Shown one piece after another: positions 15,917 to 59,558 of a stretch of 64,000 bases of DNA; position 1 is the stretch's first letter; the number at the start of each line of letters is the position of its first letter. The stretch lies in sequence record MW218148.1. One strand, 5' to 3'. The notes under the pieces are model-generated. The model saw only the letters and a program-made list of their open reading frames with translations, searched no databases and was not told the origin of the DNA. The position numbers were made by a program, and so were the translations under genes.

Positions 15917-15928
15917 TATTTAGTTGTT
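15917..15928 (-). promoter_or_regulatory. Late-type promoter AACA-N6-TA
   Basis: AACA-ACTAAA-TATA upstream of the CHAP lysin. Confidence 0.55.
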
Positions 15929-16971: not shown

Positions 16972-17001
16972 AATTAAATTTTTCCTCCTTGAATTCTTAT
17001 A

Positions 17002-17241
17002 TTAGTTTGTTTCTTCTTCTGTAGAACTCCAAACATCAGTAGACATAATATCTAATGCTTCAGGAGCTTCTACTATTTGAACTTCTTCATTTTCATGTAA
17101 ATTATTTGATAGTATCTCAGCATATTCTAAGTGACATATTGTCAAAGTTCCATCTACAGATTTTCTCCAGTGTTCAGTATTATAACCTAATTTATCAAAA
17201 AATTCTACATTTGCAATAGCAAACTTCATTACAATTTCCAC
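17002..17241 (-). CDS. Small hypothetical protein ending the fibre/LamG operon
   Basis: 79 aa ORF overlapping the end of the last LamG gene; no transmembrane segment. Confidence 0.65.
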   Translation of the reverse strand: MEIVMKFAIANVEFFDKLGYNTEHWRKSVDGTLTICHLEYAEILSNNLHENEEVQIVEAPEALDIMSTDVWSSTEEETN

Positions 17242-17966
17242 CTTTCTTTTTCCAAATCAAAGTTATGGTTTATTTCTTCTTCAGTAAGTATTCTATCGTA
17301 TATCCTTACGGTTTTAAATAATGTATTATTTTTATCATTTACAGCTCGAATAATTTCTAAATCTAATCCCATTAAAGATATATTCTTACCAGTTGTATCA
17401 CTATTAACACTACTTTTACTCATATTATTACCATTAATAAAAATATTACGTTCTAAAATTTCCCCACCTGAAAGAGTAACGATCACATGTTGTAATCCAA
17501 TATTACTTTCGGGGAAAGAGTAATACTCATGAAATAAACCAGTTGAATTATTTATATGCAAATCTAATTGACCATAGTGAAATATTAAACTGACCCTATC
17601 TGAACCATTAGCTAAAAAAAGTAAATACTGCCAGTTTATTTTACTATCGTAAATATCAAATACTAATTCTAAAGTTAGATCTTTGTTTTTTCTACGAATA
17701 GGATTTTTACTTTTAATATAATCGTCAACACCATCAAATTTTAAACCTTCTCCGGTATATCCACTATCATTAGTATAATTGAATCCAAATAAGTTACTAT
17801 CGCTATCGTTTCCACTAAGGTCTTTTAAAGTATCTTTATTGGTATCATTGTTATTTATACCTTTTAATTCATACCATAATAATAGATTATCTTTAACTGG
17901 ATTAGGGTAAATGATATCATTACCTTTATAAAGTAAATTAATAGGTTTATTACCTAAACTGATCAT
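17229..17966 (-). CDS. LamG/concanavalin-A-like domain protein, paralog 3 (candidate receptor-binding head)
   Basis: YPNPVKDNLLLWY..KDLSG..LKFDGVDDY..RIYDRILTEEEINHNF..EKERW. Confidence 0.75.
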   Translation of the reverse strand: MISLGNKPINLLYKGNDIIYPNPVKDNLLLWYELKGINNNDTNKDTLKDLSGNDSDSNLFGFNYTNDSGYTGEGLKFDGVDDYIKSKNPIRRKNKDLTLELVFDIYDSKINWQYLLFLANGSDRVSLIFHYGQLDLHINNSTGLFHEYYSFPESNIGLQHVIVTLSGGEILERNIFINGNNMSKSSVNSDTTGKNISLMGLDLEIIRAVNDKNNTLFKTVRIYDRILTEEEINHNFDLEKERWKL

Positions 17967-17969
17967 TAA

Positions 17970-18698
17970 TTATAACCCCCATCTCTCTTTTTCTATTTTA
18001 TAGTCGTGTTGTATTTCTTGGTCAGTTAATGCTCGGTTGTAAGCTTTAACAGAAAGCATTTTACCTGTTAAATTTGTATTTCCTGATACCCATTTTCCTA
18101 ACTTAGTTAGTTTTACTTCTCTAGTAGAGATTTCAGTGTTTACTGTTGATAGTAGTTCATCGTTTCCATATAGTTTTAAAGTTTTTGTATTATCGTCTAA
18201 AGTCATTGTTATTACTACTTTAGATTGATTGTTTTGTTGCATTTTATAGAATAAAATATTACTATTAGATGTTGCACTTATTTGCTTGTCTGTATATACC
18301 GAACAGTGTAAAGCGTTATAATTTCTACGCATGTAAAAGGCTTGCTGGTCAAAACCTGCAAAAAATTGTACATTTGCTGAAAAGTCCATATCTAAAGTCA
18401 TAGTTAAAGTAAATGAATTACCTAAGAATACGTCAGTTGATAAGTCATCATCAATATTATCAAATTTAAGACCATCATTATATCCACTATCATCTGTATA
18501 AGAAAAGTTTTGTAACGTTCCATTGTTACCTTTACCGCTTAAATCTTTAGCAGTATTCTTACTCACATCACTATTTTTCATACCTTTAAAGTCATACCAC
18601 AACACTAATCCATCTTTAATGGGATTTGGATATGTTAATTCATTACCTCTATATATGAAATTTATTGGATAGTTTCCTAATTTCATCTCAAATCCCAC
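17970..18698 (-). CDS. LamG/concanavalin-A-like domain protein, paralog 2
   Basis: YPNPIKDGLVLWYDFKG..KDLSGKGNNGTL..LKFDNIDD..AYNRALTDQEIQHDY..EKERW. Confidence 0.75.
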   Translation of the reverse strand: MGFEMKLGNYPINFIYRGNELTYPNPIKDGLVLWYDFKGMKNSDVSKNTAKDLSGKGNNGTLQNFSYTDDSGYNDGLKFDNIDDDLSTDVFLGNSFTLTMTLDMDFSANVQFFAGFDQQAFYMRRNYNALHCSVYTDKQISATSNSNILFYKMQQNNQSKVVITMTLDDNTKTLKLYGNDELLSTVNTEISTREVKLTKLGKWVSGNTNLTGKMLSVKAYNRALTDQEIQHDYKIEKERWGL

Positions 18699-23429: not shown

Positions 23430-24710
23430 TTATTTTCTAAAAGTTCCTTCAATACTATCTTTGATTATAAATAATATACATGGTAGTAATACGTAATCTT
23501 CTAAATCCATATCGTATTTATCATCATAGTAATTGAAAACTTTCTCTAATATTTTTTCATCTATTTTTTCATCATTCATATACATAGAAATCAGTTTATA
23601 ACGATTATCAAAATAAGTTAAACTTTTAGTACCTTGATAATCTTCATTAACTTCATTAATCTTAGTTAAATTACTTAACTCTATAAATTCATTTAATCCA
23701 TCTATTATTTCTGTATCTTCTACATTTTTATGAACAAAGCTTAACTCTTTATATTTCTCTCTAAACATCTTTAAGAAGTTATCTTTAGTGTCATTAAGAG
23801 TAATAATATTAGGTAATGTCTTTTTATCTTTTAATTTTTCATATAAAGAGAATTTATAATTCTTTTGATTTATTCTTTCATTTTTAGGATTCTTATCTTT
23901 ATACGGTAATATATTTGATAAATATGTGCTAGTTTTTACTAATAAATTATTATCATATATAAATCTAGATAAGTTCAAATCTATATACTTAATAGGAGCT
24001 ACTGCACTGAATTCATCTTCGTAATATATAAACGTATTTAATGAAGAATTATAGAAATGATCTATGAATAATTGAGAAAATTCATCAGCATATTTAATGC
24101 TATGATTAACTTGATAAAAGTCTTCTTCTAATATTAATGATTTATTATCAGTTCCAATATTTGAAAATACTGTTCTATATACGTTTGATACTTGATTTTC
24201 AATATCTTCAGTATTGACATTAAAGTTTTGGTAGTATATTTTATAATATGAAGAATTTTCTAATGAACTCATTTCTACATTAGTTATTCTATATATTCGA
24301 CTAGTTCCACTTTCCTTAGATTGGTATTGAAATACAATAAAATCGTCTGGTAAAGGTTCAATAGTGCCAGGTAATATAACTGCTTCAGATTCTAAATCTT
24401 TTTCAGTTCCCCACTCTTCATCCCATTCAATAGTAGGATTCATTTCAGATACGTTGTATAGAGGGAAATCTTTTAATTTATTATATTTCAAAGGAGAATT
24501 ATCTCCAATAATTTCTTCAACATTATCTAGTGAACGATCAGAAGTAGATTTCTCATGATCTTTACTATAGTATGTAACAAAACTAGGAGCTCCTGCTTGA
24601 AACTTACTATATTTTTCTGTACCGGATAAATATGAGGATACGTAACTATTTACAATGTCTTTTGGTTGTAAATCATCATTCGAAATAAATGTACCCATTT
24701 TAATCCTCAC
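23430..24710 (-). CDS. Virion structural protein (possibly neck/head-tail connector)
   Basis: Late promoter upstream; beta-rich core VTYY..EAVILPGTIEPLPDDFIVF..IYRITNVE typical of connector-like folds. Function is inferred. Confidence 0.45.
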   Translation of the reverse strand: MRIKMGTFISNDDLQPKDIVNSYVSSYLSGTEKYSKFQAGAPSFVTYYSKDHEKSTSDRSLDNVEEIIGDNSPLKYNKLKDFPLYNVSEMNPTIEWDEEWGTEKDLESEAVILPGTIEPLPDDFIVFQYQSKESGTSRIYRITNVEMSSLENSSYYKIYYQNFNVNTEDIENQVSNVYRTVFSNIGTDNKSLILEEDFYQVNHSIKYADEFSQLFIDHFYNSSLNTFIYYEDEFSAVAPIKYIDLNLSRFIYDNNLLVKTSTYLSNILPYKDKNPKNERINQKNYKFSLYEKLKDKKTLPNIITLNDTKDNFLKMFREKYKELSFVHKNVEDTEIIDGLNEFIELSNLTKINEVNEDYQGTKSLTYFDNRYKLISMYMNDEKIDEKILEKVFNYYDDKYDMDLEDYVLLPCILFIIKDSIEGTFRK

Positions 24711-24730: not shown

Positions 24731-24742
24731 TATGGTATTGTT
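24731..24742 (-). promoter_or_regulatory. Late-type promoter AACA-N6-TA
   Basis: AACA-ATACCA-TATA. Confidence 0.55.
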
Positions 24743-25376: not shown

Positions 25377-25934
25377 TTATAATTTAAATTCTTCATCCAA
25401 TAATTGCTCTAAGTTTTCAATAACCTTATCATCTTTACTAACTTCAGGTTTCTTATCAGGAGCTTTCTTAAAGATGGATACAAATTTATTTCCATTACTT
25501 TGAACCCATTTTTGTGCATCTTTGAAATGATCTGCAACTATTCCAATAGGTATTCTTCTAATTTTATCTTTACCTTTATACTTGATAGGTACTTCTAAAG
25601 CAGCGTTTTTACCACCAGTACGTTTGGCTACCACTACAACATTACCGGAATCAATCTTAATACCTTTACTTTTAGCTTTTATTTTAAAATTCATACAAGC
25701 TTTAGAAAAATCCGCTTCAAGAGTATCAGGCTCAACAATTCCTTCTTGAACTGCTACATCTTGAGTATTTCCACAATCTTCACACACTAATTGTCCTGAT
25801 TCATTTGAAGACATTTTAGAACCGCACTCTTCACAAATAGGTTCTTCTTTATCAGTGTCAATATCACGCTTTAATTCTTCATTAACTAAACCAAATTCTT
25901 TATCTAAAGATTCTTCTAGTAATTTAAGATCCAT
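25377..25934 (-). CDS. Head-associated protein with a Zn-ribbon
   Basis: Starts LEESLDKEFGL; CEEC..CEDC; ends LEQLLDEEFKL. Confidence 0.6.
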   Translation of the reverse strand: MDLKLLEESLDKEFGLVNEELKRDIDTDKEEPICEECGSKMSSNESGQLVCEDCGNTQDVAVQEGIVEPDTLEADFSKACMNFKIKAKSKGIKIDSGNVVVVAKRTGGKNAALEVPIKYKGKDKIRRIPIGIVADHFKDAQKWVQSNGNKFVSIFKKAPDKKPEVSKDDKVIENLEQLLDEEFKL

Positions 25935-25966: not shown

Positions 25967-25978
25967 TATTAATGTGTT
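25967..25978 (-). promoter_or_regulatory. Late-type promoter AACA-N6-TA
   Basis: AACA-CATTAA-TATT. Confidence 0.5.
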
Positions 25979-30612: not shown

Positions 30613-30624
30613 AACAACTTAATA
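30613..30624 (+). promoter_or_regulatory. Late-type promoter AACA-N6-TA
   Basis: AACA-ACTTAA-TA upstream of the vRNAP beta' gene. Confidence 0.5.
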
Positions 30625-30655: not shown

Positions 30656-31882
30656 TTGGCTAATATGACTTATCAAAATAAGACACTTAATGAAAAAGAG
30701 ATATCAACCTTATTAAGTATAGGTAAAGATGATATTACATTAGATAAATTAAAAGAATTATTTGCATTCAGAAAAAACTCTGAACCAATGTTTAATCCTT
30801 CTGATAAATTCACATTAAAGAAAAATCTAGTGTATAATAAAAATGATGAGAAAACTACTGTTGGTAGATATATATTTAACAAATTCATTTTAGATAATAA
30901 AATTGGACCTATTATTGGATATATGAATCGTAATATGAATGGTTCAGGTATAGGTGACTTCCAGTCAGATTTATCAAATCTGTTACTTAATGATATCATA
31001 ACGACTAAAGATATGTCAGAATACATTGACAAACTTCAATGGTTAGGATTCTCTATAGCTGGATTTATTAATTCTAGTTTAACAACTACTATGATGACAG
31101 CTACGGAAAAAGTTAAACAGAAAAAAGAAGAACTATTGATTAAATATGAAAAAGCTTTAAATACTCCTGGTGAAGAATTGAATGCTATAGAAGTTATTGA
31201 GAAAGAATTAATTAAATTAAGTAAAGAAGAATTAAAAGGAATTGCTGACTTGGATATTTATGATAGTGGTTCACGTGGTTCATTCGGTAATAACTATAAA
31301 TTAACAGCATTGATACGTGGAGCTAATAAAAACTTTGCTGATCCAAGTAAAATTAGAATTGCTAAAAGTTCATTAGCTGAAGGGATTGATCCTAATGAAC
31401 TATACATGTTTGGTGATATAATGACTGCAGGTTCAGCAGGACGTGCGCTTGGTACTCAAGAAGGAGGATATCAGGCTAAACAATTAATGTCGGCCTTCCA
31501 AACAACTGTTCTAGATAAAAAAGGTTCTGATTGTAGAACAAAACATCATCTTAAATTACTTTTAGATAAATCAAACGCATCATTGATGATGTATAGATAT
31601 TTCAAAGATAATAACTCAAGAGCAGGTCAATTAATTTTATTAACACCTGAAAATGTGGATGATTACATGGGTAAAGTTTTAGAATTTAGAAGTCCTATGT
31701 ATTGTGCTAGTGAAGATATTTGTAGTAAATGTGCAGGAGAATTACCTTACAAACTAGGTATTGAAAATATTGGTCTATTGGTTAACCAAGTAGCCCAAGC
31801 AATTGTAACAAGTTCTATGAAATCTTTCCATGATATGACTATCAAACAAAATGAAGTTGATATAGAAAGTTATATAGAATAA
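30656..31882 (+). CDS. rpoC: Virion RNA polymerase beta' C-terminal subunit
   Basis: SGSRGS, SSLAEG, bridge helix RALGTQEGGYQAKQL, Zn site SDCRT..FRSPMYC..ICSKCAG, trigger region TSSMKSFH; divergent from vRNAP beta. Confidence 0.9.
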   Translation: MANMTYQNKTLNEKEISTLLSIGKDDITLDKLKELFAFRKNSEPMFNPSDKFTLKKNLVYNKNDEKTTVGRYIFNKFILDNKIGPIIGYMNRNMNGSGIGDFQSDLSNLLLNDIITTKDMSEYIDKLQWLGFSIAGFINSSLTTTMMTATEKVKQKKEELLIKYEKALNTPGEELNAIEVIEKELIKLSKEELKGIADLDIYDSGSRGSFGNNYKLTALIRGANKNFADPSKIRIAKSSLAEGIDPNELYMFGDIMTAGSAGRALGTQEGGYQAKQLMSAFQTTVLDKKGSDCRTKHHLKLLLDKSNASLMMYRYFKDNNSRAGQLILLTPENVDDYMGKVLEFRSPMYCASEDICSKCAGELPYKLGIENIGLLVNQVAQAIVTSSMKSFHDMTIKQNEVDIESYIE

Positions 31883-35014: not shown

Positions 35015-35698
35015 TTATTGAATAATCTTATTTGGTTTAACTTCATTTTTCATCTTGATTTCAGTCTTAACTTTATCAAGAACTTCTGATTCATATAATG
35101 AAGGATCTTCTTCATATTTCTTAGTCATCTTCTTAACAGCTTCTATTTTATTTTCTAAAGGAGCTTCCAATTCAACTTCACTAAAAAGATCTTCAAAATT
35201 ACCGAAAACAAATTCTTCATTCAGAGGTATGAATAAATCACCATTATGTGCTAATTCATGAGCAGTATAAGATAATGGCACTATACCTATTTTACCTTCA
35301 AAATGCATTTTAATGACATCTTCAGCCACAGTAAAACTCTCATAAGACTTTTTATACTCATAATTAGTCTTAAGTTTTTCTCTATAGCTAGATACTATAT
35401 CATATAAAGATAATGGGTAGTGGTGCATTTCTATAGTTAAACGCTTATCGTCATTTATATCAACTTCTGGAATAAACTTACATTTAGTAAGATCCATTTC
35501 AGTTTTCAAAGCTTTAATAAATGATTTGTATTCATATGAGCTTCTAACTATTTTTTCAATATATTTATTAAATGTCTCTTCAGACTTTATTTCATCTTCA
35601 CTATTATACATTTCGAATTTCTTTGTTTCATCTACATTTAACTCTATAGTTTCGACTAATTTTGGAAGGTCTTTTTTATCTACTTTTGGCATTTGCAT
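35015..35698 (-). CDS. HNH-like fold protein
   Basis: CKFI..IEMHHYP..GIVPLSYTAHELAHNG resembles the beta-beta-alpha-metal pattern. Confidence 0.5.
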   Translation of the reverse strand: MQMPKVDKKDLPKLVETIELNVDETKKFEMYNSEDEIKSEETFNKYIEKIVRSSYEYKSFIKALKTEMDLTKCKFIPEVDINDDKRLTIEMHHYPLSLYDIVSSYREKLKTNYEYKKSYESFTVAEDVIKMHFEGKIGIVPLSYTAHELAHNGDLFIPLNEEFVFGNFEDLFSEVELEAPLENKIEAVKKMTKKYEEDPSLYESEVLDKVKTEIKMKNEVKPNKIIQ

Positions 35699-35743: not shown

Positions 35744-35755
35744 TAAATAATTGTT
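35744..35755 (-). promoter_or_regulatory. Late-type promoter AACA-N6-TA
   Basis: AACA-ATTATT-TATA. Confidence 0.5.
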
Positions 35756-38712: not shown

Positions 38713-39273
38713 ATGACTACAAGAATAGATTTTAACAATGAAGAAGAATATGAAGAATTCTTAGACATAAATGAATGGAATAGATTATGTATGGATTTCT
38801 GTATTAGATCATCTAGCATTAGTAAATGTGCTGCTCGAAAAGTTAGTTCTATTATAGCAGATAAAGATTCAATATACTCTTTAGGAGTTAATGGTACTTT
38901 TCCGGGTAAATTAAATTGTAATGATATATTTAAAAAAGAAGATGGAGTATGGTACATCAAAGACATTAATGAAGAAACAAACCTTTTAGAATGGATGAAA
39001 TGTGAGGATCAAGAATCTCATCATAAATGGTCTTTATTAAATGAGGTTCATGCTGAGATAAATGCTCTATCTAAAATGAATAAAAAAGGAATCTCAACTA
39101 AAAATCTTGATTTATATTGTACCCATTCACCTTGTTATAATTGTGCCAAAAGTATAATTGCTGCTGGTATTAAAAACGTTTATTATAATGAATTATATGA
39201 TGGATATGAAGACGTAATGGATCTTTTAACATCTAACGGAATTAACTTTATTAAGATTGAAGTGGGTGAATAA
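38713..39273 (+). CDS. dCMP deaminase
   Basis: SKCAARKV, GVNG, VHAEINAL, THSPCYNCAKSIIAAGIKNVYY. Confidence 0.93.
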   Translation: MTTRIDFNNEEEYEEFLDINEWNRLCMDFCIRSSSISKCAARKVSSIIADKDSIYSLGVNGTFPGKLNCNDIFKKEDGVWYIKDINEETNLLEWMKCEDQESHHKWSLLNEVHAEINALSKMNKKGISTKNLDLYCTHSPCYNCAKSIIAAGIKNVYYNELYDGYEDVMDLLTSNGINFIKIEVGE

Positions 39274-41708: not shown

Positions 41709-42452
41709 CTATGAACGAATTCCATCTTTTTCTCTTAATTTATCTATTAATGTAATAAATTCATTGTATTTTTTATCTAATATTTTAATGTAGTTATACT
41801 CTGAATTAGATGCAACTTCATCTTTTTTCTTTTCTTTAAGTTCATCACGTTTTTGGTAGTGATTATTTTTCCCTTTAATTTCAACTAATAGGTTAAAATC
41901 AGGTAAGTAGAAGTCAGGCATATAAAAATGATCTTTGTTTGCAAATTTATAAGGAATAACTATATTAGATGGTGATAAAACATTATTAGACTTAAAGTCC
42001 ATTTGTTTGTCTAAGAATTCTAAAAAGTCTTTTTCATAAGAACCCACATAAGGAGTAGGTAAACCTTTACCTGAAGACCAATGATACTTTCCAGATATTT
42101 TTCTATTAGCTAACATTTTATTTTGCATATCAGGATCATTTAATAAAGTCGTCTTACCGTACTTTTTATTCATTCTTTCTTTAAATTGCTCTCTATATTT
42201 TTCCTTACAAATCTTATCATGTACTCTTTCATATTTTTCAGTTTTCTCATTAAATTTGGTAGGTTTTCCACATATGATACATGTACCATGAGTTTTTTTA
42301 TTTCTAAAGTTAAAATAAACGTTAGCAGCAGATAAATTACCTAATTCTTTAGGATGACATTTTTCCATATGATTATATAATCCTTTTTTATCTACATATT
42401 TCTTAGGACAAAATGGACATTTATGATATTTTGTAGCCATTATTAATTTCAC
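41709..42452 (-). CDS. C2H2/Zn-finger protein with a TnsA/T4 gp4-like PD-(D/E)xK endonuclease domain (head-completion nuclease candidate)
   Basis: CPFC..HMEKCH, CIICG; GSYEKDFLEFLD..IPYKF..HFYMPDFYLPDFNLLVEIKG. Confidence 0.7.
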   Translation of the reverse strand: MKLIMATKYHKCPFCPKKYVDKKGLYNHMEKCHPKELGNLSAANVYFNFRNKKTHGTCIICGKPTKFNEKTEKYERVHDKICKEKYREQFKERMNKKYGKTTLLNDPDMQNKMLANRKISGKYHWSSGKGLPTPYVGSYEKDFLEFLDKQMDFKSNNVLSPSNIVIPYKFANKDHFYMPDFYLPDFNLLVEIKGKNNHYQKRDELKEKKKDEVASNSEYNYIKILDKKYNEFITLIDKLREKDGIRS

Positions 42453-42480: not shown

Positions 42481-42492
42481 TAAATGCTTGTT
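42481..42492 (-). promoter_or_regulatory. Late-type promoter AACA-N6-TA
   Basis: AACA-AGCATT-TATA. Confidence 0.5.
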
Positions 42493-46933: not shown

Positions 46934-47698
46934 TTGACTAATTTTACAGCTTCACAATTCCTCAAAAACCCTACAGGTAAAGGTTCAGCAACTGTGGCAA
47001 GACGTGATAGAATTATACTAGATATGAGAACAAGATTTTCTTATCTATACAGGAAAAATAAAAGGAATTTTAAGTTAAAAATATTCTTATATCAGGATAA
47101 GTATTACTTTTATTTTCAAATACCTTCTGAAGACTATTATAAAGAGGGATTAATATATGACGTTATAATAGAATTTAGACCACCTAATGAAAAAGCAGCT
47201 AAGTCTAAAGATCTTAATAACTACTTAATTAGATTTATTAGTAACTCTCCTAACTTCATGTTTACTTATGGTTATCTTTATAATAAGGATGATTTATTAA
47301 TAAGTTGGTTAAGCTATAAATTAGGACCTAAAGCACTAAATCAACCTCCAGAAATAAGAAACCCTAGACTTGAATACGGTTTTGAGAAATCAGTTTATTT
47401 TGCTCTTTTATACTTGGAAACAAACCCTAAAGCATTAAAAAATCCATTACACTTAACTTTACCTAACAGACAAAGAATTAAAAGCTCATTTAAATCATCT
47501 GAGTTAAAGTTAAGGGAATACAACAAAATTAAGAAACAAAATTCATCTAAGAAAAAGAATCAATCATCTTTAAAGAAAAAGTTAAATGATCGTGTATCTA
47601 AATTCAACGAAGAAAAGCAGAGGAAAACTAAACCGATTAACCGTAAAGTAAAACCTATCGGTAAGGTTAAAAAGGTTAAAACAACAAAGAGAAAATGA
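46934..47698 (+). CDS. Hypothetical protein with a highly basic C-terminal tail
   Basis: 254 aa, TTG start after AGGGG, K/R-rich tail. Confidence 0.7.
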   Translation: MTNFTASQFLKNPTGKGSATVARRDRIILDMRTRFSYLYRKNKRNFKLKIFLYQDKYYFYFQIPSEDYYKEGLIYDVIIEFRPPNEKAAKSKDLNNYLIRFISNSPNFMFTYGYLYNKDDLLISWLSYKLGPKALNQPPEIRNPRLEYGFEKSVYFALLYLETNPKALKNPLHLTLPNRQRIKSSFKSSELKLREYNKIKKQNSSKKKNQSSLKKKLNDRVSKFNEEKQRKTKPINRKVKPIGKVKKVKTTKRK

Positions 47699-47704
47699 CT
47701 TAAT

Positions 47705-47724
47705 AAATATATATTATAAAAATG
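47705..47724 (+). promoter_or_regulatory. Early-type promoter motif
   Basis: AAATATATATTATAAAAATG exact copy upstream of the sigma-like subunit. Confidence 0.65.
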
Positions 47725-47770
47725 ATAAATGATTAAAACCATTTATCATTTCATCATTATTATTTGAGGA

Positions 47771-49516
47771 GTGTGTCGGATATTGGAAAGAATTGCTGAG
47801 ATTGAAGAAAAGAAAGGTTTAGACTTAAAAAGGATTGATAAACTAGTTTTTAACGAAGAAGAAGTGCCATTATTATCTAGTAACGTTAATAAGCTTAATA
47901 GAGTTTATGGAGATTTTAACCCTACGAATAAGTATATTAATTCACAAGATTTAGAGACAATAGAAAAAGAAAGTAGTAAAGGTAAAGTCGACTTTGATTA
48001 CATACAAAGAGATGATATTTTACCTTTAGTTAAATTTATTGAATCAGAAAAGAATGACACTATCTTTATAGACTTCAATAAAATACTTGAAACAGATAAT
48101 CGAAAAGTAAATAAAGAAGAAGATTTTAATGACATATTTACAATTCAGATTAAACAAAGATCTTACAAGAGTATATTAGATTTTATTGTTAATGATATGA
48201 ATTATATTGTTAATGAAATACCGCATATTATAATTAAAGCAGCGACTATATTAAGTAAGATTTCTAAACTTAAAGATAATTATGATGAAGTAGATTTCTT
48301 TAAAGATATACAAAATCTCATTGAAGATGAAGATCTAAGAAATATTATTCGTTATATTGTGGAGAATAACTATACTATAAACTTAGATCAAACTAATGCT
48401 GAAGCAATGTTACAAAGTAAAAAGGTTATTAAGAAAGACCTTCAAGTAACAGACAAAGTCAATCAGTCATTCTTATCAGCAGCTTTGTTACAAAGATTTA
48501 TCATACCGTTTATTAGTCAATATTATGTAATCACTAATAAGTATCATTGTGAAAATGCTGATGCAGATAAAGAAAGAACTAAAAATGGTTATTTCAAAGC
48601 GTTCAATTATTGTATGTGCGTTGCTTCATTTGATTATAATGTAAGTAATAATAATAAACTGTACAAGATTGTTGAACCGAAAGTAATCAAAACGAAATAT
48701 AATGATAGAGTTATTTGGAGATTCTTAGATTTAAGATCTATCGATCCAGATACAGTTATCAACAAAATTATGGATAAAATTATCAGACAAATCGTATGTA
48801 AATTATTAGTTGATACTTCAGCTGTAGCGTACTTTACTTCAGTAATTAAATTCTCTATTGATTATGAATTTAAATATAAATATCCTATCAAATTCAGATC
48901 TATTAGATTAACTACTGATGACGATGATGAGGAAGATAGCTTTGATAGATTCCAAATGAATAATTTCCATAAGGTTAATGAACGTTTAGATTTAGCTAAT
49001 AAAATCACTATAGACAGATTCATTAATGAAAGAATTAAAGAACTAGATATTTCAGATGATTATATAAATAGATTATATGATAAATTTGATTATATTAATG
49101 ATCTTCAATCACACTTAATTAAAGTATACTTTGCTGAATACTTTAATGTAACTACTAATGATAGAAAAAGTATTGTCTCGCTTTTAGCTATCATGTCTAA
49201 AGAATTAATTAACAATAATATGGTTACTCTAGGTAAAATTGTTGCTAGTAAAGTTATATCTGGAACTAAGGCTAAGAATGTAGGTAAACTATCTCTTGAT
49301 GTTATCGCTGATAGATATTATGTTGAAGCTTGGAATAAATATAAATTTATAAATGACATCACAGAAAAAGATAATTTCATCTTAAGAATAGCTTTGGTTA
49401 ATGGATATTCATTTAGTTTCACTCCAGAAGATAATAATAAAGAAGAAGAGATTATAGAAGATATTGATAAGAAGTTCTTTATATCAGAAGTGTCTCAATT
49501 CATTTCTCAGTATTAA
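47771..49516 (+). CDS. Sigma-like promoter-specificity subunit of the non-virion RNAP (AR9 gp226 / phiKZ gp68 family)
   Basis: KQRSY, DLQVTD, NKLYKI..TKYNDRVIW and FKYKYPI match my recollection of AR9 gp226 (NKRSY, ELQVTD, NKLYKI..TKYSDVVIW, FTFKYPI). Confidence 0.82.
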   Translation: MCRILERIAEIEEKKGLDLKRIDKLVFNEEEVPLLSSNVNKLNRVYGDFNPTNKYINSQDLETIEKESSKGKVDFDYIQRDDILPLVKFIESEKNDTIFIDFNKILETDNRKVNKEEDFNDIFTIQIKQRSYKSILDFIVNDMNYIVNEIPHIIIKAATILSKISKLKDNYDEVDFFKDIQNLIEDEDLRNIIRYIVENNYTINLDQTNAEAMLQSKKVIKKDLQVTDKVNQSFLSAALLQRFIIPFISQYYVITNKYHCENADADKERTKNGYFKAFNYCMCVASFDYNVSNNNKLYKIVEPKVIKTKYNDRVIWRFLDLRSIDPDTVINKIMDKIIRQIVCKLLVDTSAVAYFTSVIKFSIDYEFKYKYPIKFRSIRLTTDDDDEEDSFDRFQMNNFHKVNERLDLANKITIDRFINERIKELDISDDYINRLYDKFDYINDLQSHLIKVYFAEYFNVTTNDRKSIVSLLAIMSKELINNNMVTLGKIVASKVISGTKAKNVGKLSLDVIADRYYVEAWNKYKFINDITEKDNFILRIALVNGYSFSFTPEDNNKEEEIIEDIDKKFFISEVSQFISQY

Positions 49517-49599: not shown

Positions 49600-50751
49600 C
49601 TATCGGTTTAATTCACCTTCAAATAGATAATCAATATTAATGTAAGTTCTTTCAAACACTTCTTCATTAAGTGTTTTAATTTCATTAGGATCATTAAAGT
49701 CAATAATCTGTGATGAAATTATATTCTGTATCTTACTACCGTCTATCTCATCAACTATATGTGAATGATTAAACAATTTAAATCTCTTAATTAATTCTTC
49801 CATTTTATCGTCTTTTAATTTACCTGAAAATAACTTTCTTAAAGAAGATTCATTTGCATAATCTTTAAGAGGTGATAACTCTATATCAGATATCATTTTA
49901 TCTAATAATTTGACTGTAGATACTGGTCCATAACCAGGAATTGATTTGTATTCTTGATCTTTATGGTCTGTAAATAAGTTATATATGTCTAAGATATTAT
50001 AGTCTATATTAACAAATTCATTAATGTCCTTTTTAGTTCCTGAACTAAATAACTCATCTTTAACATTCTCTTTTGATATAACTTTACTCTTTTCTGAACC
50101 TCTTAACTCTAATAATAACATTCTATCTTTATATTTTAATAACTGTCTGTATATTTTATCATTACTAACTATTAAAGAATAATCATTATTATTGTCTATA
50201 TTAGTTTTATTTATAATATAGTATGGTAGTATAGTTGGTTCTATTTTGTAGGTATCAATAAAATATGCATTAGGAATATACTTAACTATAGTTTTAACCA
50301 ACTCTAAAGTTGATTTAATTGTCTTATTTGTATCTCTATAAGTTATATTATTTTTATCCATCTTCTTATAATATTCTTTCTTATAGTTACTATCTATATT
50401 TGTATGATAAATGGATTCTTTATCTGAATAGAATAAAAAGAATCTACTATGCATACTTAACCTACTTGCAAAGAAATGTCTATAATGCCCTATTATATTA
50501 ACCAACTCTACCACTAAATTTAATCTATCTTTAGTTTTTATATGAGTAAAGTTTTCAGCTATCTGAGGCGAATATAACTGTTTGATTACTGAATTGATAT
50601 CTATATAAACAGTAACGTTATCATTGTTTGTATAACTATTAAATTTCCCTCCTTCTACATAAGGTCTAACTAATTCTGTCATTTTGTTATAATTTAATTT
50701 TTTGGAATTTATAATACGTTCTATTATACTAATATCCATTATGTAACTCAC
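49600..50751 (-). CDS. 5'-3' exonuclease/flap endonuclease (PIN plus H3TH, T4 RNase H-like)
   Basis: VYIDINS, IVSNDKIYRQL, SIPGYGPVSTVKLL; the EADD-equivalent reads IEPT, so activity is uncertain. Confidence 0.7.
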   Translation of the reverse strand: MSYIMDISIIERIINSKKLNYNKMTELVRPYVEGGKFNSYTNNDNVTVYIDINSVIKQLYSPQIAENFTHIKTKDRLNLVVELVNIIGHYRHFFASRLSMHSRFFLFYSDKESIYHTNIDSNYKKEYYKKMDKNNITYRDTNKTIKSTLELVKTIVKYIPNAYFIDTYKIEPTILPYYIINKTNIDNNNDYSLIVSNDKIYRQLLKYKDRMLLLELRGSEKSKVISKENVKDELFSSGTKKDINEFVNIDYNILDIYNLFTDHKDQEYKSIPGYGPVSTVKLLDKMISDIELSPLKDYANESSLRKLFSGKLKDDKMEELIKRFKLFNHSHIVDEIDGSKIQNIISSQIIDFNDPNEIKTLNEEVFERTYINIDYLFEGELNR

Positions 50752-50820: not shown

Positions 50821-50832
50821 AACATTCACTTA
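50821..50832 (+). promoter_or_regulatory. Late-type promoter AACA-N6-TA
   Basis: AACA-TTCACT-TATA. Confidence 0.55.
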
Positions 50833-50855
50833 TAATAATATGTATTGGGAAGTCG

Positions 50856-52139
50856 GTGAATTTTAAATTGATAGAGAGTTTAATTACTAAAAAAATATTT
50901 AATATAAGGTTAATAGCTTTATATTCAGATGGAGAATCTGAAGATTTATCTCAATTCATTAAACGATCCAGAATTGAAATGAACTTTCAAGAATTCATAA
51001 TGCCTTACTATAGGTTTATATTAAGATTACCTAAAGAGACTATAATTAAAATTAATAAAGACAGAGACAAAATTGTTTTCTCATTCAACTCAAATATGAT
51101 AACTACTGATGCTGAAAGTGAAAGTCTTTCTGTACCATTTTATGAAGAAATTATATTGAAACCATTAATGGATTTAAGTAATCCAGTTAATTATGATGAT
51201 AGAATAACTAGAGATGATGAAGATGAGAAACATTTATTTGATCGTTATGAATTAGTAGCAATATCAGAAGAGACTTTAAAAACAAATAAACCTATTGTAT
51301 CTGGAATATATAATAACTGTACTGTATCAGAAGTAGTTACAGATCTATTATCAAATCTTAATAATAGAGATATCTATCTCCATGAAATTGATAATGATAA
51401 GATATATGAACAAATAATACTACTTCCAGCTAATGTATATGATAATATAAAATTCATAGATGATGTTTATGGAATATATAATAGAGAAATCAAAGTATTT
51501 AATCATGAATCAGGTTTAAATATACTACCAATGTCTGGATTTGATCCTAATGAAATTGGTAAAGTTAAAATTGATATAAGATTTCCTGCCAATCAAACTG
51601 CTGAAGAAATCATAGAAGGATCATATGAACAAATATCTGAAGTTGATGATAGAGTAAGAAATAAAAATATATCTACTAAAATAAATAATGTATCTTTAAT
51701 AGACAATACACGTTTATTTAATGAGCTAATCGGTTCTGAAATAAATCTTTTTGGAATGGAAAATACTTCTGATTCACCTAAATTAAGTACTCATAAGAGA
51801 TATATTGAAGATAGAAATGGTGTTGTTAATAAAGTTAAAGTTTATGATGACATATACGATAATCCATACAGTTTAGAAAAAGAATTTAATAATAGTAAAG
51901 ATATAATTGTAAAAATTCAGCTTAATGACATTGATATAACTATGGATGATACATTCAAACAATTTGACTTAGAATTCTTTAATCAATATTATAAACACTA
52001 TAATGGTTTATATGAGTTACTTTCAATTAATCAAGAATTCAAGACCGCTAACAAAGCTTTAGTTCTTTCTAATTATGTAACTTTAAGAAAAATAAATGAC
52101 CATGTATTTACACAAAATGATAATAATCCCAATACCTAA
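50856..52139 (+). CDS. Virion protein, probable baseplate hub (gp27-like)
   Basis: Late promoter; SGIYNNCTVSEVVTDLL..EQIILLP..IKFIDDVYG pattern of hub proteins; likely start is the TTG at 50868. Confidence 0.45.
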   Translation: MNFKLIESLITKKIFNIRLIALYSDGESEDLSQFIKRSRIEMNFQEFIMPYYRFILRLPKETIIKINKDRDKIVFSFNSNMITTDAESESLSVPFYEEIILKPLMDLSNPVNYDDRITRDDEDEKHLFDRYELVAISEETLKTNKPIVSGIYNNCTVSEVVTDLLSNLNNRDIYLHEIDNDKIYEQIILLPANVYDNIKFIDDVYGIYNREIKVFNHESGLNILPMSGFDPNEIGKVKIDIRFPANQTAEEIIEGSYEQISEVDDRVRNKNISTKINNVSLIDNTRLFNELIGSEINLFGMENTSDSPKLSTHKRYIEDRNGVVNKVKVYDDIYDNPYSLEKEFNNSKDIIVKIQLNDIDITMDDTFKQFDLEFFNQYYKHYNGLYELLSINQEFKTANKALVLSNYVTLRKINDHVFTQNDNNPNT

Positions 52140-52935: not shown

Positions 52936-52966
52936 AGACCTAATACCCATATAGAGTATTAGGTCT
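52936..52966 (-). terminator. Terminator hairpin
   Basis: AGACCTAATAC / GTATTAGGTCT with poly-T on the minus strand. Confidence 0.75.
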
Positions 52967-52974
52967 GTAATCAA

Positions 52975-53823
52975 TTAAGCATTCATAGCTTTAGCTTTTT
53001 TGTCAGCTGCTTTATTTTGATCTTTAACAGCTTGTTTAGCGTTTTTAGCACTTGCTTTGCTTCCACTATTTAAGATTTTAGCTACTTTATAAGCTTTGCC
53101 AAGAACTTCATTATTACTAGCAATTGACATTGAAGCATATTTACGAGCTAATGCTATACATTTATTATTGATTTTAATTTCAGCTTTCTTTTGATTCACT
53201 AATTCTTTATCCCCTTTAGCGGCTGCTTGAGTACCAGTTTTAGCACTGCCATCAGCGTTAGAAGAGTTTGTTTTGATAGTTTTAGCAGTCGATTTAATTT
53301 CTTTCATGCTCGTACTAGAATTACGAACTGCATTCACTATAGAACTTTTATCTTTTAATGTTGATTCTTTCCAAATTACACTTTTATCACTTTTTTCTGC
53401 ATTAAGTAAAGATTGTAATTGGTATAGTTCTTCTTCTTTTTTCTTAACATCAACATTAGCTGTGTCAAGTTTGCCTAAGTCAACCCCACCAGATAGAAGA
53501 ACAAATACTTTTTCTTCTTGGTCTTTTTCAACTGTACCATTTAAGTTTGCTTGAGCAATATATTTTTTAATATTGTTGAAACGAGAGAATAATTTATTGT
53601 AAGCATCAACGAAGAAAGTCATGAATTTCTTAACCGCTTCTTTAATAGCTTTAATAATTTTGATAAAGAATTCTTTAGCTTTTTCGCCAAATCCTTTTCC
53701 GTCTTTTGTATCTTCTTCAGCTTCATTTAAGGCATTGAAACTTTCTAACACCATAAGTTCATTTTCTGAAGCAGATAATTGTTCTTCTAAAATAGAATAT
53801 TCAAATGATTGATTTTGTAACAT
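52975..53823 (-). CDS. Internal head (ejection) protein paralog
   Basis: ILEE..VLES..LNEAE propeptide then FGEKAKEFFIKIIKAIKEAVKKFMTFF. Confidence 0.65.
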   Translation of the reverse strand: MLQNQSFEYSILEEQLSASENELMVLESFNALNEAEEDTKDGKGFGEKAKEFFIKIIKAIKEAVKKFMTFFVDAYNKLFSRFNNIKKYIAQANLNGTVEKDQEEKVFVLLSGGVDLGKLDTANVDVKKKEEELYQLQSLLNAEKSDKSVIWKESTLKDKSSIVNAVRNSSTSMKEIKSTAKTIKTNSSNADGSAKTGTQAAAKGDKELVNQKKAEIKINNKCIALARKYASMSIASNNEVLGKAYKVAKILNSGSKASAKNAKQAVKDQNKAADKKAKAMNA

Positions 53824-53874
53824 TATATAATTTCCTCCATTTATTTAAATTTATATATTTTGTTTTTTAATACA

Positions 53875-54957
53875 TTAGAAACTGATATTAAAATCATCTT
53901 CTAATTCTCTTCCAATTTCTGAATCGATTTTATCAGATTCTGACTTACCTTGAACTTCAGATACACCATCTTCAATATCAATTCGGTCAGCTAATTTATT
54001 TAAACGTTCAGCAGCTTTATTCTGTTTTTCACGTGCTTTATCTGATAAGTTATCATTTTGTTCACCTTCAATGATTTTAACAGCTTCACGTAAATATTCA
54101 GCTAAGTCTGAACGGGTTTTGATTATTTTAATGTACGCTTGTTTAACTAAAAATAAAGATAACATAGATCCTGCAAGTACAGTTATAGTTAACCCACCGT
54201 ATTTAATGAATTTTTCAGATTTTGATAATTTATCAAGCACATCACTTGCACCAATTTCTTTAGCTAATTTACTAATACTGTCAAGATCAAATTCAAATCC
54301 TTCATTAGTACTAATGAAAGAACCTTCAAATTTAAAAGTATCTCTAAGTTTTCCAGCTTTGTACATTTTCAAAACATTTTCCAATGTTTTTAATTCAACA
54401 GAGTCTTTCTTTCTTAACTTATCACCATTAAATACTAATCTACCTTGTTCATTATCAAAACCTAAGAAGAATAGTTGAGTAGTAAGTAATAGTACAGAAG
54501 AAGCAACAGTAGTATAAACTAATTGTCCCACTTCATTATTATTGTTAAAACATTTTTTAAAGTTATTTTTTTCTTTTTCAAGTAAGTTTACAGAATTCTC
54601 TACTGTATCAAAAACGGAAATAAGTTTAGGGTCAAAGCTTCTAGACTTATGAGCTTTTAAAAATTTAAAAGTTTTTTCAAAATCTTTATATGCTTTAACC
54701 TTATTAAAATCACCTTTACTAGAAAGGACTGATTTTAAGTTTTTATTTCCTGATTTTTTCAACATTTTTTCAGACGTTTTAGAAATAGCTACAGTTAAGG
54801 CTTGCATTTTCTCTTCTGGATCTAATCTCTTAAAAGGTCTGAAAGGTAAAGAGAATTCCTGTAAAACTTTTTGTGTCATTGCATCTTCACTAAGAAGATG
54901 TTTGCTTTCAAGAAGTTCCACAGGGAATCTCCACTTCCTTTCTAGGAATAAATTCAA
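53875..54957 (-). CDS. Probable virion (head/ejection) protein with hydrophobic segments
   Basis: Late promoter at 55011-55022; LLES/LSE/LQE sites near the N-terminus; hydrophobic VASSVLLLTTQLFFLG and LTITVLAGSMLSLFLV. Confidence 0.5.
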   Translation of the reverse strand: MNLFLERKWRFPVELLESKHLLSEDAMTQKVLQEFSLPFRPFKRLDPEEKMQALTVAISKTSEKMLKKSGNKNLKSVLSSKGDFNKVKAYKDFEKTFKFLKAHKSRSFDPKLISVFDTVENSVNLLEKEKNNFKKCFNNNNEVGQLVYTTVASSVLLLTTQLFFLGFDNEQGRLVFNGDKLRKKDSVELKTLENVLKMYKAGKLRDTFKFEGSFISTNEGFEFDLDSISKLAKEIGASDVLDKLSKSEKFIKYGGLTITVLAGSMLSLFLVKQAYIKIIKTRSDLAEYLREAVKIIEGEQNDNLSDKAREKQNKAAERLNKLADRIDIEDGVSEVQGKSESDKIDSEIGRELEDDFNISF

Positions 54958-55010
54958 ATAAAATAGAAAATGCTAATCTACACGCTAATATAAATTTCAT
55001 TTTTATTTTA

Positions 55011-55022
55011 TAAAATTTTGTT
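55011..55022 (-). promoter_or_regulatory. Late-type promoter AACA-N6-TA
   Basis: AACA-AAATTT-TATA. Confidence 0.55.
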
Positions 55023-55092: not shown

Positions 55093-56616
55093 TTATCGTT
55101 TTAATAATTTTTCAAGCATTTCAGAAGTTAAATCTTTTTGGTTATTCTTAACTTTGTAAGCACCAAGTTTACTTTCTTTAATGACTTCAAATTTATTATG
55201 GTCTGGTAAATATTTATAAACTAATTCTCTAGTTTGGTCTATGATAATAAAGTCTAATAAGAAGAATTCATTATAAATTTTCTTAACTGCTCTACGGTCA
55301 GATAATAAATCTACACCAGTTTTACGTTTAACTTCGTTAGCTTCATCAATAGTAATCATTAAAGCTGTTGTTGGAATATAGTTAGCTTTAGCTGACTTAG
55401 CAATACCAGAAGCTTTATTAACTGTATAAAGAGAATTTAATTTGTTCCAAATAGCACCAGAACGTCCTTTTTTAGAGTCTTGAGCTATTTTTTTAACTTT
55501 ATCAGCATCTAATAATAAATCTTTAACTAAACGTAATTCACCTGTAGTAAATTTAACTAATTTAGTTACTAAGTTTGAACCACGAGATTTATCAGAAAGA
55601 TAGAAGATGATGTCTTCAGTTTTAACAACATGAACTACTGTTTTAACACCGAATTTAACTTCTTTAGGAACTAATACTCCTGGTAAATATTCACCTTTAC
55701 TATCAGTTCCCATAAAAGTAACTTTAGAAGAAATAGTTGTAGGTAAAGAAGAATTTATTTTATCTTTATCAATAACTACTTTTGCACCGAATTTTTCATC
55801 TACTTCATTCTTAGATCTAGAAACATAACTCTCAACTCTATCTAAAAATGAATCTAAGACGGTATCATCCGATATAAATAGAACTTTGCCTTTAGCATCT
55901 TTATGAGGTTCACCATTTAAAAGATTTTTAACATTTTTTGAAGGATCACTCTCTTTAAGTCCTTTAAATTCATATTCTTCAGTTTCAATTTTTTCTTTCT
56001 CTATTTCATTTCCATCTCTATCTTTTTTAGCTTCTTCTCTTATAGTTAACTTAAGTTTCAAATCATAGGTAGTTGATGAATTTTCTTGTCTAGATTTAAT
56101 AAAATCTTTTTCATCAAAATCAAATTCATATTTTCTTGTATTTTCATTATTGCTTATTTTAAATCCTTCATTTACAAGTTCTTTCATTTCTTCTCTAGTG
56201 ATAGTCATATTATTTAAAGAAGACATATTAAATTTTTCTTCAGGAGTTTCTAATAAATAATTATTAGATCTTTTAATATCTTCTTTTGTACTTTCAGCTA
56301 AATTTACATTATTATGTAAATCAGCCATAAATGAAGTAGGGTCTTTCGGATCAAAAGTTTGTAACGGTGAATTTGTTAATACAAAATCAAACTCAAAAGC
56401 TCTCTCTAATTCTAACTGGTTTCTCATTAATTCAACTGTGTCTTGTTCTATAGTATCAGATGTAACTAAAGGGAACTGTAGAATGAAATCTCCTGATCTA
56501 GATTTCATTGAACGTTTTCTTTTATTATTGTCTTTATAATTTTTTCTTATACTATTTGGTTTTATATCTTGTAATAAAGATATTACATCTGTAAAAAGAT
56601 TTACTTTATTGGCCAA
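55093..56616 (-). CDS. Probable virion structural protein
   Basis: Late promoter, TTG start, internal LAES/LLE/VNE sites; sits in a head-protein cluster. Confidence 0.5.
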   Translation of the reverse strand: MANKVNLFTDVISLLQDIKPNSIRKNYKDNNKRKRSMKSRSGDFILQFPLVTSDTIEQDTVELMRNQLELERAFEFDFVLTNSPLQTFDPKDPTSFMADLHNNVNLAESTKEDIKRSNNYLLETPEEKFNMSSLNNMTITREEMKELVNEGFKISNNENTRKYEFDFDEKDFIKSRQENSSTTYDLKLKLTIREEAKKDRDGNEIEKEKIETEEYEFKGLKESDPSKNVKNLLNGEPHKDAKGKVLFISDDTVLDSFLDRVESYVSRSKNEVDEKFGAKVVIDKDKINSSLPTTISSKVTFMGTDSKGEYLPGVLVPKEVKFGVKTVVHVVKTEDIIFYLSDKSRGSNLVTKLVKFTTGELRLVKDLLLDADKVKKIAQDSKKGRSGAIWNKLNSLYTVNKASGIAKSAKANYIPTTALMITIDEANEVKRKTGVDLLSDRRAVKKIYNEFFLLDFIIIDQTRELVYKYLPDHNKFEVIKESKLGAYKVKNNQKDLTSEMLEKLLKR

Positions 56617-56649: not shown

Positions 56650-56661
56650 TAAAGATATGTT
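56650..56661 (-). promoter_or_regulatory. Late-type promoter AACA-N6-TA
   Basis: AACA-TATCTT-TATA. Confidence 0.55.
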
Positions 56662-58561: not shown

Positions 58562-58573
58562 AACATAGCCTTA
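58562..58573 (+). promoter_or_regulatory. Late-type promoter AACA-N6-TA
   Basis: AACA-TAGCCT-TATT upstream of the baseplate operon. Confidence 0.55.
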
Positions 58574-58595: not shown

Positions 58596-59558
58596 GTGAC
58601 AAGAGAATTGGCTGAAGATAATTTTAAAAAGGCGTTAAAAAAAGAAGGAGATATTCATGAAATAAAATCCTTTAATCCATATAGAATGAAAGATAAAAAC
58701 TCAGAAATATTTAATAAAGGTCTACCTTTTATTTTCTTTACAGCACCTAGACTTAATCTAGTTGATGATAATCTAGGTAGAGAAGGTTTCTTTCTTTATT
58801 TAAGAGCAGTTAAACCTGATTTATTAAAAAGTCTTAACTTCAGTAATGCTGGAGCTTTAAGTTCTGGTAAACCGTTTATGCCAATTCTTTCTAATAGATT
58901 TATGGGAATATCTATTCCTGATACACAAACTACAATGAAAGAATTCCATGAGACATTTTATGGTTATAAACAGCATTTACCTATAGGTAATGTTAACTCC
59001 CTTGCTGGTGGAGAAATTACGGTTGATTTTGAGGAAAATAAAGAAATAGATATAATACACTTGATTAAAGCGTGGAGTGAGTATATAGAAGGTATTACAA
59101 GAGGATATATGTATCCTTCTGATGATGCTAAGAATAAAAGATATATAGACTATACTAGTTCTATATATTATTTCTTATTAGATTTTGATGGAGAGACTAT
59201 TCTTCATTACTCTAAATATACTGGTTGCTTCCCTATTAATGTACCTTATGATGTATTTTCACAAAATATTGGAGAAGATCCAGAAGTTCCTCATGTATCA
59301 ATTAACTTTGCTTATTCATATAAAGAAGATATGAACCCAGATACTCTAGTTGATTTTAATTCAGTATCTACTATGGCAACTAGTATAGCTAATGCTTCAG
59401 GAACTCAACCTATTAAAGCTAAAATTAATACTGTATCTATGGGTAATAAATTAAATTATGATGAAATGTATCCAGTTGATACGGGAAATCCGTACGTAGT
59501 TATGGGGCAAAGAAAAGAAGATAAAGCTAAACCAAAATATAGATTAAGATTTTTATAA
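58596..59558 (+). CDS. Tail-tube-fold baseplate protein (T4 gp48/gp54-like)
   Basis: GISIPD..EITVDFEE..HLIKAWSEYI..DYTSSIYYFLLD..YSKYTGCFPINVP is a tube-fold pattern; likely start is the TTG of MAEDNF. Confidence 0.65.
   Translation: MTRELAEDNFKKALKKEGDIHEIKSFNPYRMKDKNSEIFNKGLPFIFFTAPRLNLVDDNLGREGFFLYLRAVKPDLLKSLNFSNAGALSSGKPFMPILSNRFMGISIPDTQTTMKEFHETFYGYKQHLPIGNVNSLAGGEITVDFEENKEIDIIHLIKAWSEYIEGITRGYMYPSDDAKNKRYIDYTSSIYYFLLDFDGETILHYSKYTGCFPINVPYDVFSQNIGEDPEVPHVSINFAYSYKEDMNPDTLVDFNSVSTMATSIANASGTQPIKAKINTVSMGNKLNYDEMYPVDTGNPYVVMGQRKEDKAKPKYRLRFL

Follow-up and report, generated by a model that had tools for sequence, protein, structure and literature searches.

The DNA analysed here is a 64,000-nucleotide stretch (the window) that is base-for-base identical to positions 186001–250000 of sequence record MW218148.1, the genome of Staphylococcus phage vB_StaM_SA1 (hereafter SA1). 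The complete SA1 genome comprises 260,727 bp. This jumbo phage infects S. lentus, has pig-farm sewage as its source, and has been proposed as a separate genus (genome similarity of 65.6% or lower). The element of interest is a gene on the plus strand at window positions 47783–49516, whose product (QPI17159.1) carries the label "hypothetical protein" in GenBank. From its sequence, this protein is clearly an ortholog of gp226, the promoter-specificity subunit of the non-virion RNA polymerase (RNAP) of phage AR9. By analogy with AR9, the SA1 gene very probably encodes the fifth, sigma-like subunit of a non-virion multisubunit RNAP, and late transcription by this enzyme would be uracil dependent.

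The longest open reading frame (ORF) at the locus spans 47771–49516 on the plus strand and begins with GTG at 47771. Both the GenBank coding sequence (CDS) and that of a cluster relative, P0001, start at TTG 47783. A Shine–Dalgarno sequence (GAGGAG, 47766–47771) overlaps the GTG codon and is followed 11 nt later by the TTG codon, and therefore a 577-residue product starting at 47783 is the likelier one on sequence grounds. The first ∼110 residues (window 47783–48110) constitute an N-terminal extension that is absent in AR9, BpSp, and phiR1-37, but that is common to the Staphylococcus clade, Listeria-type relatives, and several metagenomic relatives. In a structural model generated with AF2, this extension consists of a few short strands with pLDDT values of 60–85.

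An initial annotation of this DNA, prepared without database searches, had proposed that ORF 47771–49516 encodes an AR9 gp226-like subunit, and the homology searches bear this out. Only one strong match was obtained among PDB chains, namely chain A of 7S01, 7UM0, and 7UM1, which is gp226 in the AR9 non-virion RNAP holoenzyme. ORF residues 116–549 align with residues 27–439 of the 464-residue 7S01_A, a span of 434 residues, with an E value of 3.6e-37. The product also matches the PHROGs family phrog_25005, "RNA polymerase" (E = 1.4e-51). Identity to AR9 gp226 is ∼29% across the entire length of that protein, whereas the subunits of the Staphylococcus jumbo phages S6, MarsHill, Madawaska, Machias, PALS2, UFV_DC4, and PB50 are 75–86% identical to that of SA1 and have all the same pocket residues. 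The AR9 protein has sigma2-like and sigma-finger-like elements and gives the catalytic core its promoter specificity (PMC9209446). The term "sigma-like" as used for the SA1 subunit follows that work and denotes an analogy of structure and function. Members of the bacterial sigma-70 family read the non-template strand, whereas the AR9 enzyme reads the template strand.

A 9-sequence alignment was used to build the AF2 model, which has a pLDDT of 66.5. Its best Foldseek matches are 7S01_A (6.9e-16) and 7UM0_A, followed in third place by phiKZ gp68 (8QUE_B, E = 3.8e-4), with global TM-scores of just 0.38–0.46. The phiKZ protein (8QUE_B, 7OGP_B) is the fifth subunit of the phiKZ non-virion RNAP, and thus is a structural relative with an equal role as a core-bound specificity subunit, but it has no usable sequence similarity to the SA1 subunit. 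Phage phiKZ has thymine DNA and uses a late promoter element, TATG, located at the transcription start.

Residues of the uracil-reading pocket were located by a HMMER alignment to 7S01_A and by a 12-sequence MAFFT alignment of close homologs. The SA1 segment KYNDR-V-IW pairs with KYSDV-V-IW of AR9, such that V314 corresponds to V206, and SAVA-Y-F pairs with SSVIS-Y-L, such that Y354 corresponds to Y246. The initial annotation had assigned these same two positions, and the assignments prove exact (Val codon GTT, 48710–48712; Tyr codon TAC, 48830–48832). The functions that it gave, exclusion of the thymine methyl group at promoter position −10 by Val206 and stacking of Tyr246 at the fork, likewise agree with the published account (PMC9209446).

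The plus-strand codons for Val314-Ile315-Trp316 (48710–48718) correspond to AR9 V206-I207-W208 of the 2.1bis helix, which contributes to the pocket for the −10 U. Nearby, Phe318 (48722–48724) retains the aromatic character of Tyr210, Ala353-Tyr354 (48827–48832) align with Ser245-Tyr246, which contact the non-template strand, and Tyr369-Lys370-Tyr371 (48875–48883) align with Phe261-Lys262-Tyr263. Among the 12 close homologs, V206 and W208 are invariant, and position 207 is Ile or Met. In SA1, 210 is Phe, 246 is Tyr, and the 261/262/263 triad is Tyr/Lys/Tyr. The K-Y-x-D-x-V-I-W motif of 2.1bis, the aromatic residue at 210, Tyr246, and K262/Y263 are all kept in SA1, which differs from AR9 by Ala in place of Ser245, Phe in place of Tyr210, and Tyr in place of Phe261.

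The functions of these residues are known from AR9 (PMC9209446; PMC5449584). The −10 U is wedged between I207 of gp226 and R363 of the betaN subunit (gp105), and it is hydrogen-bonded by betaN Lys375 (PMC9209446). The C-beta of V206 lies 3.9 Å from C5 of this base, and the V206G variant accepts T. Y210 stacks on the −9 G, which is hydrogen-bonded by the F261 and Y263 main chains. The Y246A mutation abolishes transcription on double-stranded templates, but activity is retained on fork templates (PMC9209446). The SA1 betaN homolog lies outside the window at record positions 65166–66785 (E = 1.9e-78). Its R384 is the counterpart of Arg363, which is invariant in the eight phages compared (AR9, BpSp, LPJP1, phiR1-37, SA1, S6, MarsHill, and Machias).

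If SA1 follows AR9, the subunit gene would be transcribed early by the injected virion RNAP, and its product would join a split beta/beta′ core. The resulting holoenzyme would read the template-strand sequence 3′-UUGU-5′ at positions −11 to −8, with the −10 uracil buried between Val314/Ile315 and betaN Arg384. A thymine methyl group would clash in such a pocket, which would make late transcription dependent on the replacement of deoxythymidine (dT) by deoxyuridine (dU) in the phage DNA.

Several observations weigh against this mechanism or limit how far it can be taken. Judged from sequence, the SA1 pocket is not a perfect copy of that of AR9. The replacement of Ser245 by Ala353 is the sole non-conservative change among the positions compared and is confined to SA1 and its closest relative from metagenomes. 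Ala is a small residue, and its presence here is probably tolerated; S245E is the one mutant assayed at this position in AR9 (PMC9209446). At betaN position 375, the phages of Bacillus, Listeria, and Yersinia have Lys or Arg, but all four Staphylococcus phages checked have Asn (Asn397 in SA1, and the equivalents in S6, MarsHill, and Machias). Moreover, SA1 alone has Gly in place of the Lys that precedes this position in the other three Staphylococcus phages. The pLDDT values of the AF2 model fall below 50 at the 2.1bis helix and pocket (residues 301–328 in 577-residue numbering), and therefore the model supports the fold assignment only and not the geometry of the pocket. Finally, those who described SA1 used ordinary library preparation and PCR, and mention neither uracil nor any difficulty with sequencing or amplification.

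The betaN substitutions and the uneventful sequencing of SA1 favor an alternative in which the protein is a gp226 ortholog, but SA1 DNA contains thymine or some other base. In this scenario, descent or structural needs would explain the kept pocket, and promoters would be read independently of uracil. A further point in its favor is that Val206 does not suffice as a predictor. When 1.84 billion representatives were searched with a profile, 266 clusters of the gp226 family were obtained (E ≤ 1e-3), compared with the 12 GenBank homologs of 2022. Of these clusters, 156 were aligned (the survey includes proteins P0010–P0158 and loci L034–L143, which are IMG/VR contigs). Trp is present at position 208 in 155 of the 156 aligned members. 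At position 206, just 93 have Val, and the others carry Thr (12), Lys (9), Ile (9), Ala, Pro, Arg, or Ser (5 each), Gly (4), or a few other residues. Members that lack Val are dispersed across the tree, with one coherent clade rich in Arg and Lys. Natural Gly206 variants (P0107 and P0143) are found on contigs of 2–3 kb.

The gene content of genomes from this wider family served as a calibration. IMG/VR contigs of 95–340 kb carrying gp226-family genes were searched for ThyA, ThyX, dUTPase, and deaminases. Thymidylate synthase is encoded by none of the 15 genomes with the AR9-like motif T-x-Y-S-D-x-X-[IMF]-W, whereas it is encoded by 29 of 30 distant relatives in which the motif is degenerate (ThyA in 9, ThyX in 20). 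This difference is highly significant (Fisher's exact test, p = 4.6e-11), but it represents essentially one deep phylogenetic split and not many independent events. Val occupies the aligned 206 position in the thymidylate-synthase-positive distant relatives G020, G022, G026, G027, G028, G033, and G042, and therefore Val206 alone is no predictor of uracil. Within the AR9-like subfamily, the residue at 206 does not discriminate at all, with thymidylate synthase in 0 of 12 for Val and Arg/Lys types alike. The proposal in the initial annotation that the kept pocket, with the promoter sites, predicts dU-containing DNA (dU-DNA) is supported for the signature as a whole, and is weak if it is made to depend on Val206 alone.

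The gene content of SA1 resembles that of dU phages and argues against a thymine-containing genome. Genes for ThyA (PF00303), ThyX (PF02511), and dUTPase (PF00692) are absent from the SA1, AR9, and phiR1-37 genomes in searches that included positive controls. SA1 does carry a dCMP deaminase gene at 38713–39273 on the plus strand (PF00383, 1.3e-16; genome-search match at record positions 224773–225186), whose product is a plausible source of dUMP for the synthesis of dU-DNA. A dCMP deaminase is likewise present in AR9, phiR1-37, G007, and G008; the enzyme of G009 is a dCTP deaminase (TIGR02274, 103.8 bits). Among the complete Val-type genomes, a dC-to-dU deaminase is found in six of six and dUTPase in none of the six.

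Kinship points in the same direction. The SA1 subunit shares 84–86% identity with those of S6 and MarsHill. In S6 DNA, uracil reportedly takes the place of all thymine. The DNA of MarsHill-like phages behaves as dU-DNA in that it is refractory to enzymes whose sites contain A/T and requires a uracil-tolerant polymerase (Korn et al., bioRxiv version). The Lys375-to-Asn change in betaN also occurs in S6, and since the DNA of this phage reportedly has uracil, the change is compatible with a dU genome. No Ugi-like inhibitor of uracil-DNA glycosylase has been identified in Staphylococcus jumbo phages, SA1 included (PMC10303552). Given this evidence, a thymine-based SA1 genome is unlikely.

Late promoters cognate to a gp226-type subunit have the form 5′-AACA-N6-T(A/G)-3′, and AR9 has the late motif AACA-N6-TA. 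The latter motif was counted in sense orientation 10–75 nt upstream of ORF starts, and the counts were compared with those for the antisense orientation and for 1000 dinucleotide shuffles. In the window as a whole, the motif is less frequent than expected by chance (63 matches versus 88.8 ± 9.2). Upstream of ORFs, there are 12 sense and 0 antisense sites, whereas the shuffles average 2.5 ± 1.6 and never exceed 9. The 12 sites noted in the initial annotation are therefore real and above chance. The same pattern extends to the whole SA1 genome, where 31 sense and 4 antisense sites are found (10.5 ± 2.9 expected), and where the distances from putative transcription start to start codon cluster at 20–49 nt.

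The signal is specific to each part of the motif. AACA ranks first among all 256 four-mers before N6-TA in the share of its genomic copies that lie upstream of genes (15% in 2.5% of positions). A spacer of 6 nt gives 31 upstream sites, whereas other spacers between 3 and 9 nt give 10–19, and only 2 sites are found when TG replaces TA. Across the genome, there are 212 copies with the 6-nt spacer versus 266–349 with any other spacer. This depletion suggests that there is selection against stray copies of the late promoter inside genes. SA1 shares the AR9 motif but adds a conserved T after TA, which is present in 25 of 30 sites.

Nine of the 12 sites in the window are on the minus strand. Two of these precede lysis genes: 15917–15928 is 30 nt before an endolysin gene (15039–15887), and 17000–17011 is 29 nt before an endolysin/amidase gene (16015–16971). 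Four others precede genes for virion proteins. The site at 17999–18010 lies 33 nt before a virion-protein-like gene (17229–17966), and the sites at 24731–24742, 55011–55022, and 56650–56661 lie 21, 54, and 34 nt, respectively, before virion structural protein genes (23430–24710, 53875–54957, and 55093–56616). The remaining minus-strand sites are located 33 nt before ORF 25377–25934 (site 25967–25978), 46 nt before ORF 35015–35698, a member of phrog_12252 (35744–35755), and 29 nt before an endonuclease gene at 41709–42452 (42481–42492). On the plus strand, the site at 30613–30624 is 32 nt before an RNAP beta-like subunit gene (30656–31882), which we infer encodes a virion-RNAP subunit. The site at 50821–50832 is 24 nt before ORF 50856–52139, a homolog of AR9 g218 and phiR1-37 g196, and that at 58562–58573 is 23 nt before ORF 58596–59558.

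A PHROGs scan of 10 of the 12 downstream genes assigned 7 to late-type functions (two characterised endolysins, four virion proteins, and the RNAP beta-like subunit), and the endonuclease was also found. In the published RNA-seq study of SA1, the late class includes the lysins, the endonuclease at 41709–42452, and three RNAP subunit genes (ORF177, 222, and 223); the comparison of motif with temporal class covers the few genes named in the text of that paper. As a positive control, 40 kb of AR9, where the signal has been experimentally defined, gives 12 sense and 4 antisense sites with a shuffle mean of 2.9. In two distant, thymidylate-synthase-positive relatives, no clear enrichment is seen (6 sense, 3 antisense, and a shuffle mean of 3.1 in G022; 8, 5, and 4.3 in G020).

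RNA-seq runs from one study were usable in the form of Logan contigs, from which transcript starts and strands cannot be fixed. Contigs over ORF 50856–52139 begin at 50846 and 50859, which is 14–27 nt downstream from the predicted start at 50832, although this agreement is weak. Two contigs stop at 54990 and 54995 and so fall 16–21 nt short of the start predicted at 55011, whereas other contigs read through this site and thus count on the opposite side. Near the site at 56650–56661, the listed contig pieces reach no further than 56527. The contig ends are consistent with the promoter prediction, and no more than this. We also observed that contig depth over 52950–54350 on the minus strand, which includes genes 52975–53823 and 53875–54957, is several orders of magnitude above that of neighboring regions in two runs. 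Contig depth is a rough guide, but very abundant late transcripts are probable in this region because 53875–54957 matches a virion structural protein family.

A different explanation for the upstream sites is that they are a by-product of AT-rich, purine-rich leaders, and that late transcription uses another signal. The motif is short, and MEME recovered no late motif in MarsHill. Furthermore, only 30 of ∼245 SA1 ORFs carry a site in the right window, and a slight, non-significant excess of sense over antisense sites is present even in G020 and G022. However, the signal is tied to a 6-nt spacer and a TA end, the motif is depleted elsewhere, and the upstream sites favor the sense orientation and a narrow range of distances. 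The late-type character of the downstream genes and the recovery of the AR9 signal by the same test also argue against this explanation, which we regard as quite improbable. The full pocket motif combined with the late-promoter signal, gene content, and kinship predicts dU-DNA, and on these grounds SA1 virion DNA is highly likely to carry dU.

The surroundings of the subunit gene are conserved as well. SA1, AR9, BpSp, phiR1-37, and LPJP1 all have GroEL, the g227/g244 homolog, and the gp226 homolog in this order. Upstream of the SA1 subunit gene is an AR9-type early (virion-RNAP) promoter, TAAATATATATTATAAAAATGA, at 47704–47725 on the plus strand, with the core TATATTAT at 47710–47717. It is located 45–53 nt ahead of the two candidate starts, and an 18-mer within it recurs unchanged at the early promoter annotated upstream of AR9 g226. 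The 22-mer early consensus precedes ∼25 SA1 genes. With such a promoter, the subunit gene is predicted to be transcribed early, as in AR9, by the virion RNAP that enters with the phage DNA upon injection. The possibility that the ORF shares just a helical fold with gp226 and is not an RNAP subunit could draw on its GenBank label and on a Pfam scan that gave zero families at E ≤ 0.01, sigma region 2 and 4 domains included, but is extremely improbable given the extent of the match to 7S01_A, the conservation of functional motifs, synteny, and early promoter, and the database annotation of the Machias, Madawaska, and PB50 homologs as specificity subunits.

The gene immediately upstream (46934–47698, plus strand) encodes a 254-residue homolog of AR9 g227 and phiR1-37 g244 (phrog_20045). 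This homolog adjoins the sigma-like gene in all relatives examined, among them the Arg/Lys206 clade described below. It is annotated as a structural protein in phiR1-37, and it has been listed as exclusive to uracil-DNA phages (PMC10303552). On the other side of the subunit gene, a homolog of AR9 g220 (49600–50751, minus strand; phrog_26916) is divergent from ORF 50856–52139. An early-type motif, TAATTATATATTATAGAAATGA, lies 14 nt before the start of its longest ORF. GenBank places the start at 50739, and the true start is probably further downstream than that of the longest ORF.

Two irregular genes were encountered among the relatives. The gp226 homolog of the Listeria phage LPJP1 is annotated as two consecutive CDSs (L004:1465–2613 and 2692–3087), the first of which has the Val-Ile-Trp motif; the split may stem from a frameshift or a stop codon, or from an error in sequencing. 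The betaN homolog of Bacillus phage vB_BpuM-BpSp (L025, record positions 134279–135829) gives a two-piece match with three TAA stops inside the longer piece. Introns have been reported in RNAP genes of AR9-like phages, and one probably interrupts this gene.

The Arg/Lys206 clade is a sister group represented by IMG/VR contigs of 145–333 kb, two of them complete, and its members have lost the aromatic residue at position 210. The gene order GroEL – g227 – sigma-like gene is retained, and a gene of the dUTPase family separates the g227 homolog from the sigma-like gene (L037:1474–1878 and L041:1400–1870, on contigs of 333 kb and 214 kb). A dUTPase-like gene is directly upstream of the sigma-like gene in G002 and G004, and by coordinates in G006; the arrangement is also noted for G003. 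The clade genes have the usual dUTPase motifs, and their best NCBIfam matches are dUTP diphosphatase models with scores of 126–137 bits, which is below the equivalog cut-off. Genes for dCMP/dCTP deaminase and ThyA/ThyX are all absent from the clade genomes examined. In G006, the one clade member tested, the motif AACA-N6-T(A/G) is enriched before genes (14 sense, 4 antisense, and a shuffle mean of 3.9). The DNA of this clade could be something other than plain dU-DNA, or uracil could be read differently. The residue at 206 might act as a natural switch of specificity within a family that greatly exceeds the 12 homologs published so far, but this idea is tentative and we consider it doubtful at present.

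Parts of this picture have been published previously. The mechanism and its extension to this SA1 protein are correct and already in print, as QPI17159.1 is among the homologs with an "absolutely conserved" valine in Supplemental Figure 5 of Fraser et al. (2022; PMC9209446). SA1 and PALS2 have been named as putative uracil-DNA phages (Muselmani et al. 2023; PMC10303552), and Korn et al. (bioRxiv) assigned the specificity subunit and detected the early promoter in MarsHill-like phages, whereas the late motif was missed by MEME. One inconsistency between these reports concerns an accession. PMC10303552 cites YP_009283131.1 as "this RNA polymerase" of AR9, whereas its Table 3 gives the same accession as the 274-residue homolog of phiR1-37 g244 (g227), and the apparent gp226 is listed as YP_009283130.1 in Supplemental Figure 5 of PMC9209446. 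The PSI-BLAST query used in PMC10303552 was probably the neighboring gene. The results that are new here are the SA1 late-promoter map with its statistics, the Lys375-to-Asn change in betaN, and the family-wide gene-content calibration.

The late-promoter map makes the motif AACA-N6-TAT explicit for a Staphylococcus jumbo phage, where MEME had failed on MarsHill. The "hypothetical protein" QPI17159.1 deserves the name non-virion RNAP specificity subunit. If the Arg/Lys206 clade does differ in its DNA or in the way uracil is read, then the Val-Ile-Trp-x-Phe signature of SA1 would be a discriminating marker and not a frozen family trait. SA1 itself should be treated as a probable uracil-DNA phage, which matters for PCR, library preparation, restriction mapping, studies of host defence, and therapeutic use.

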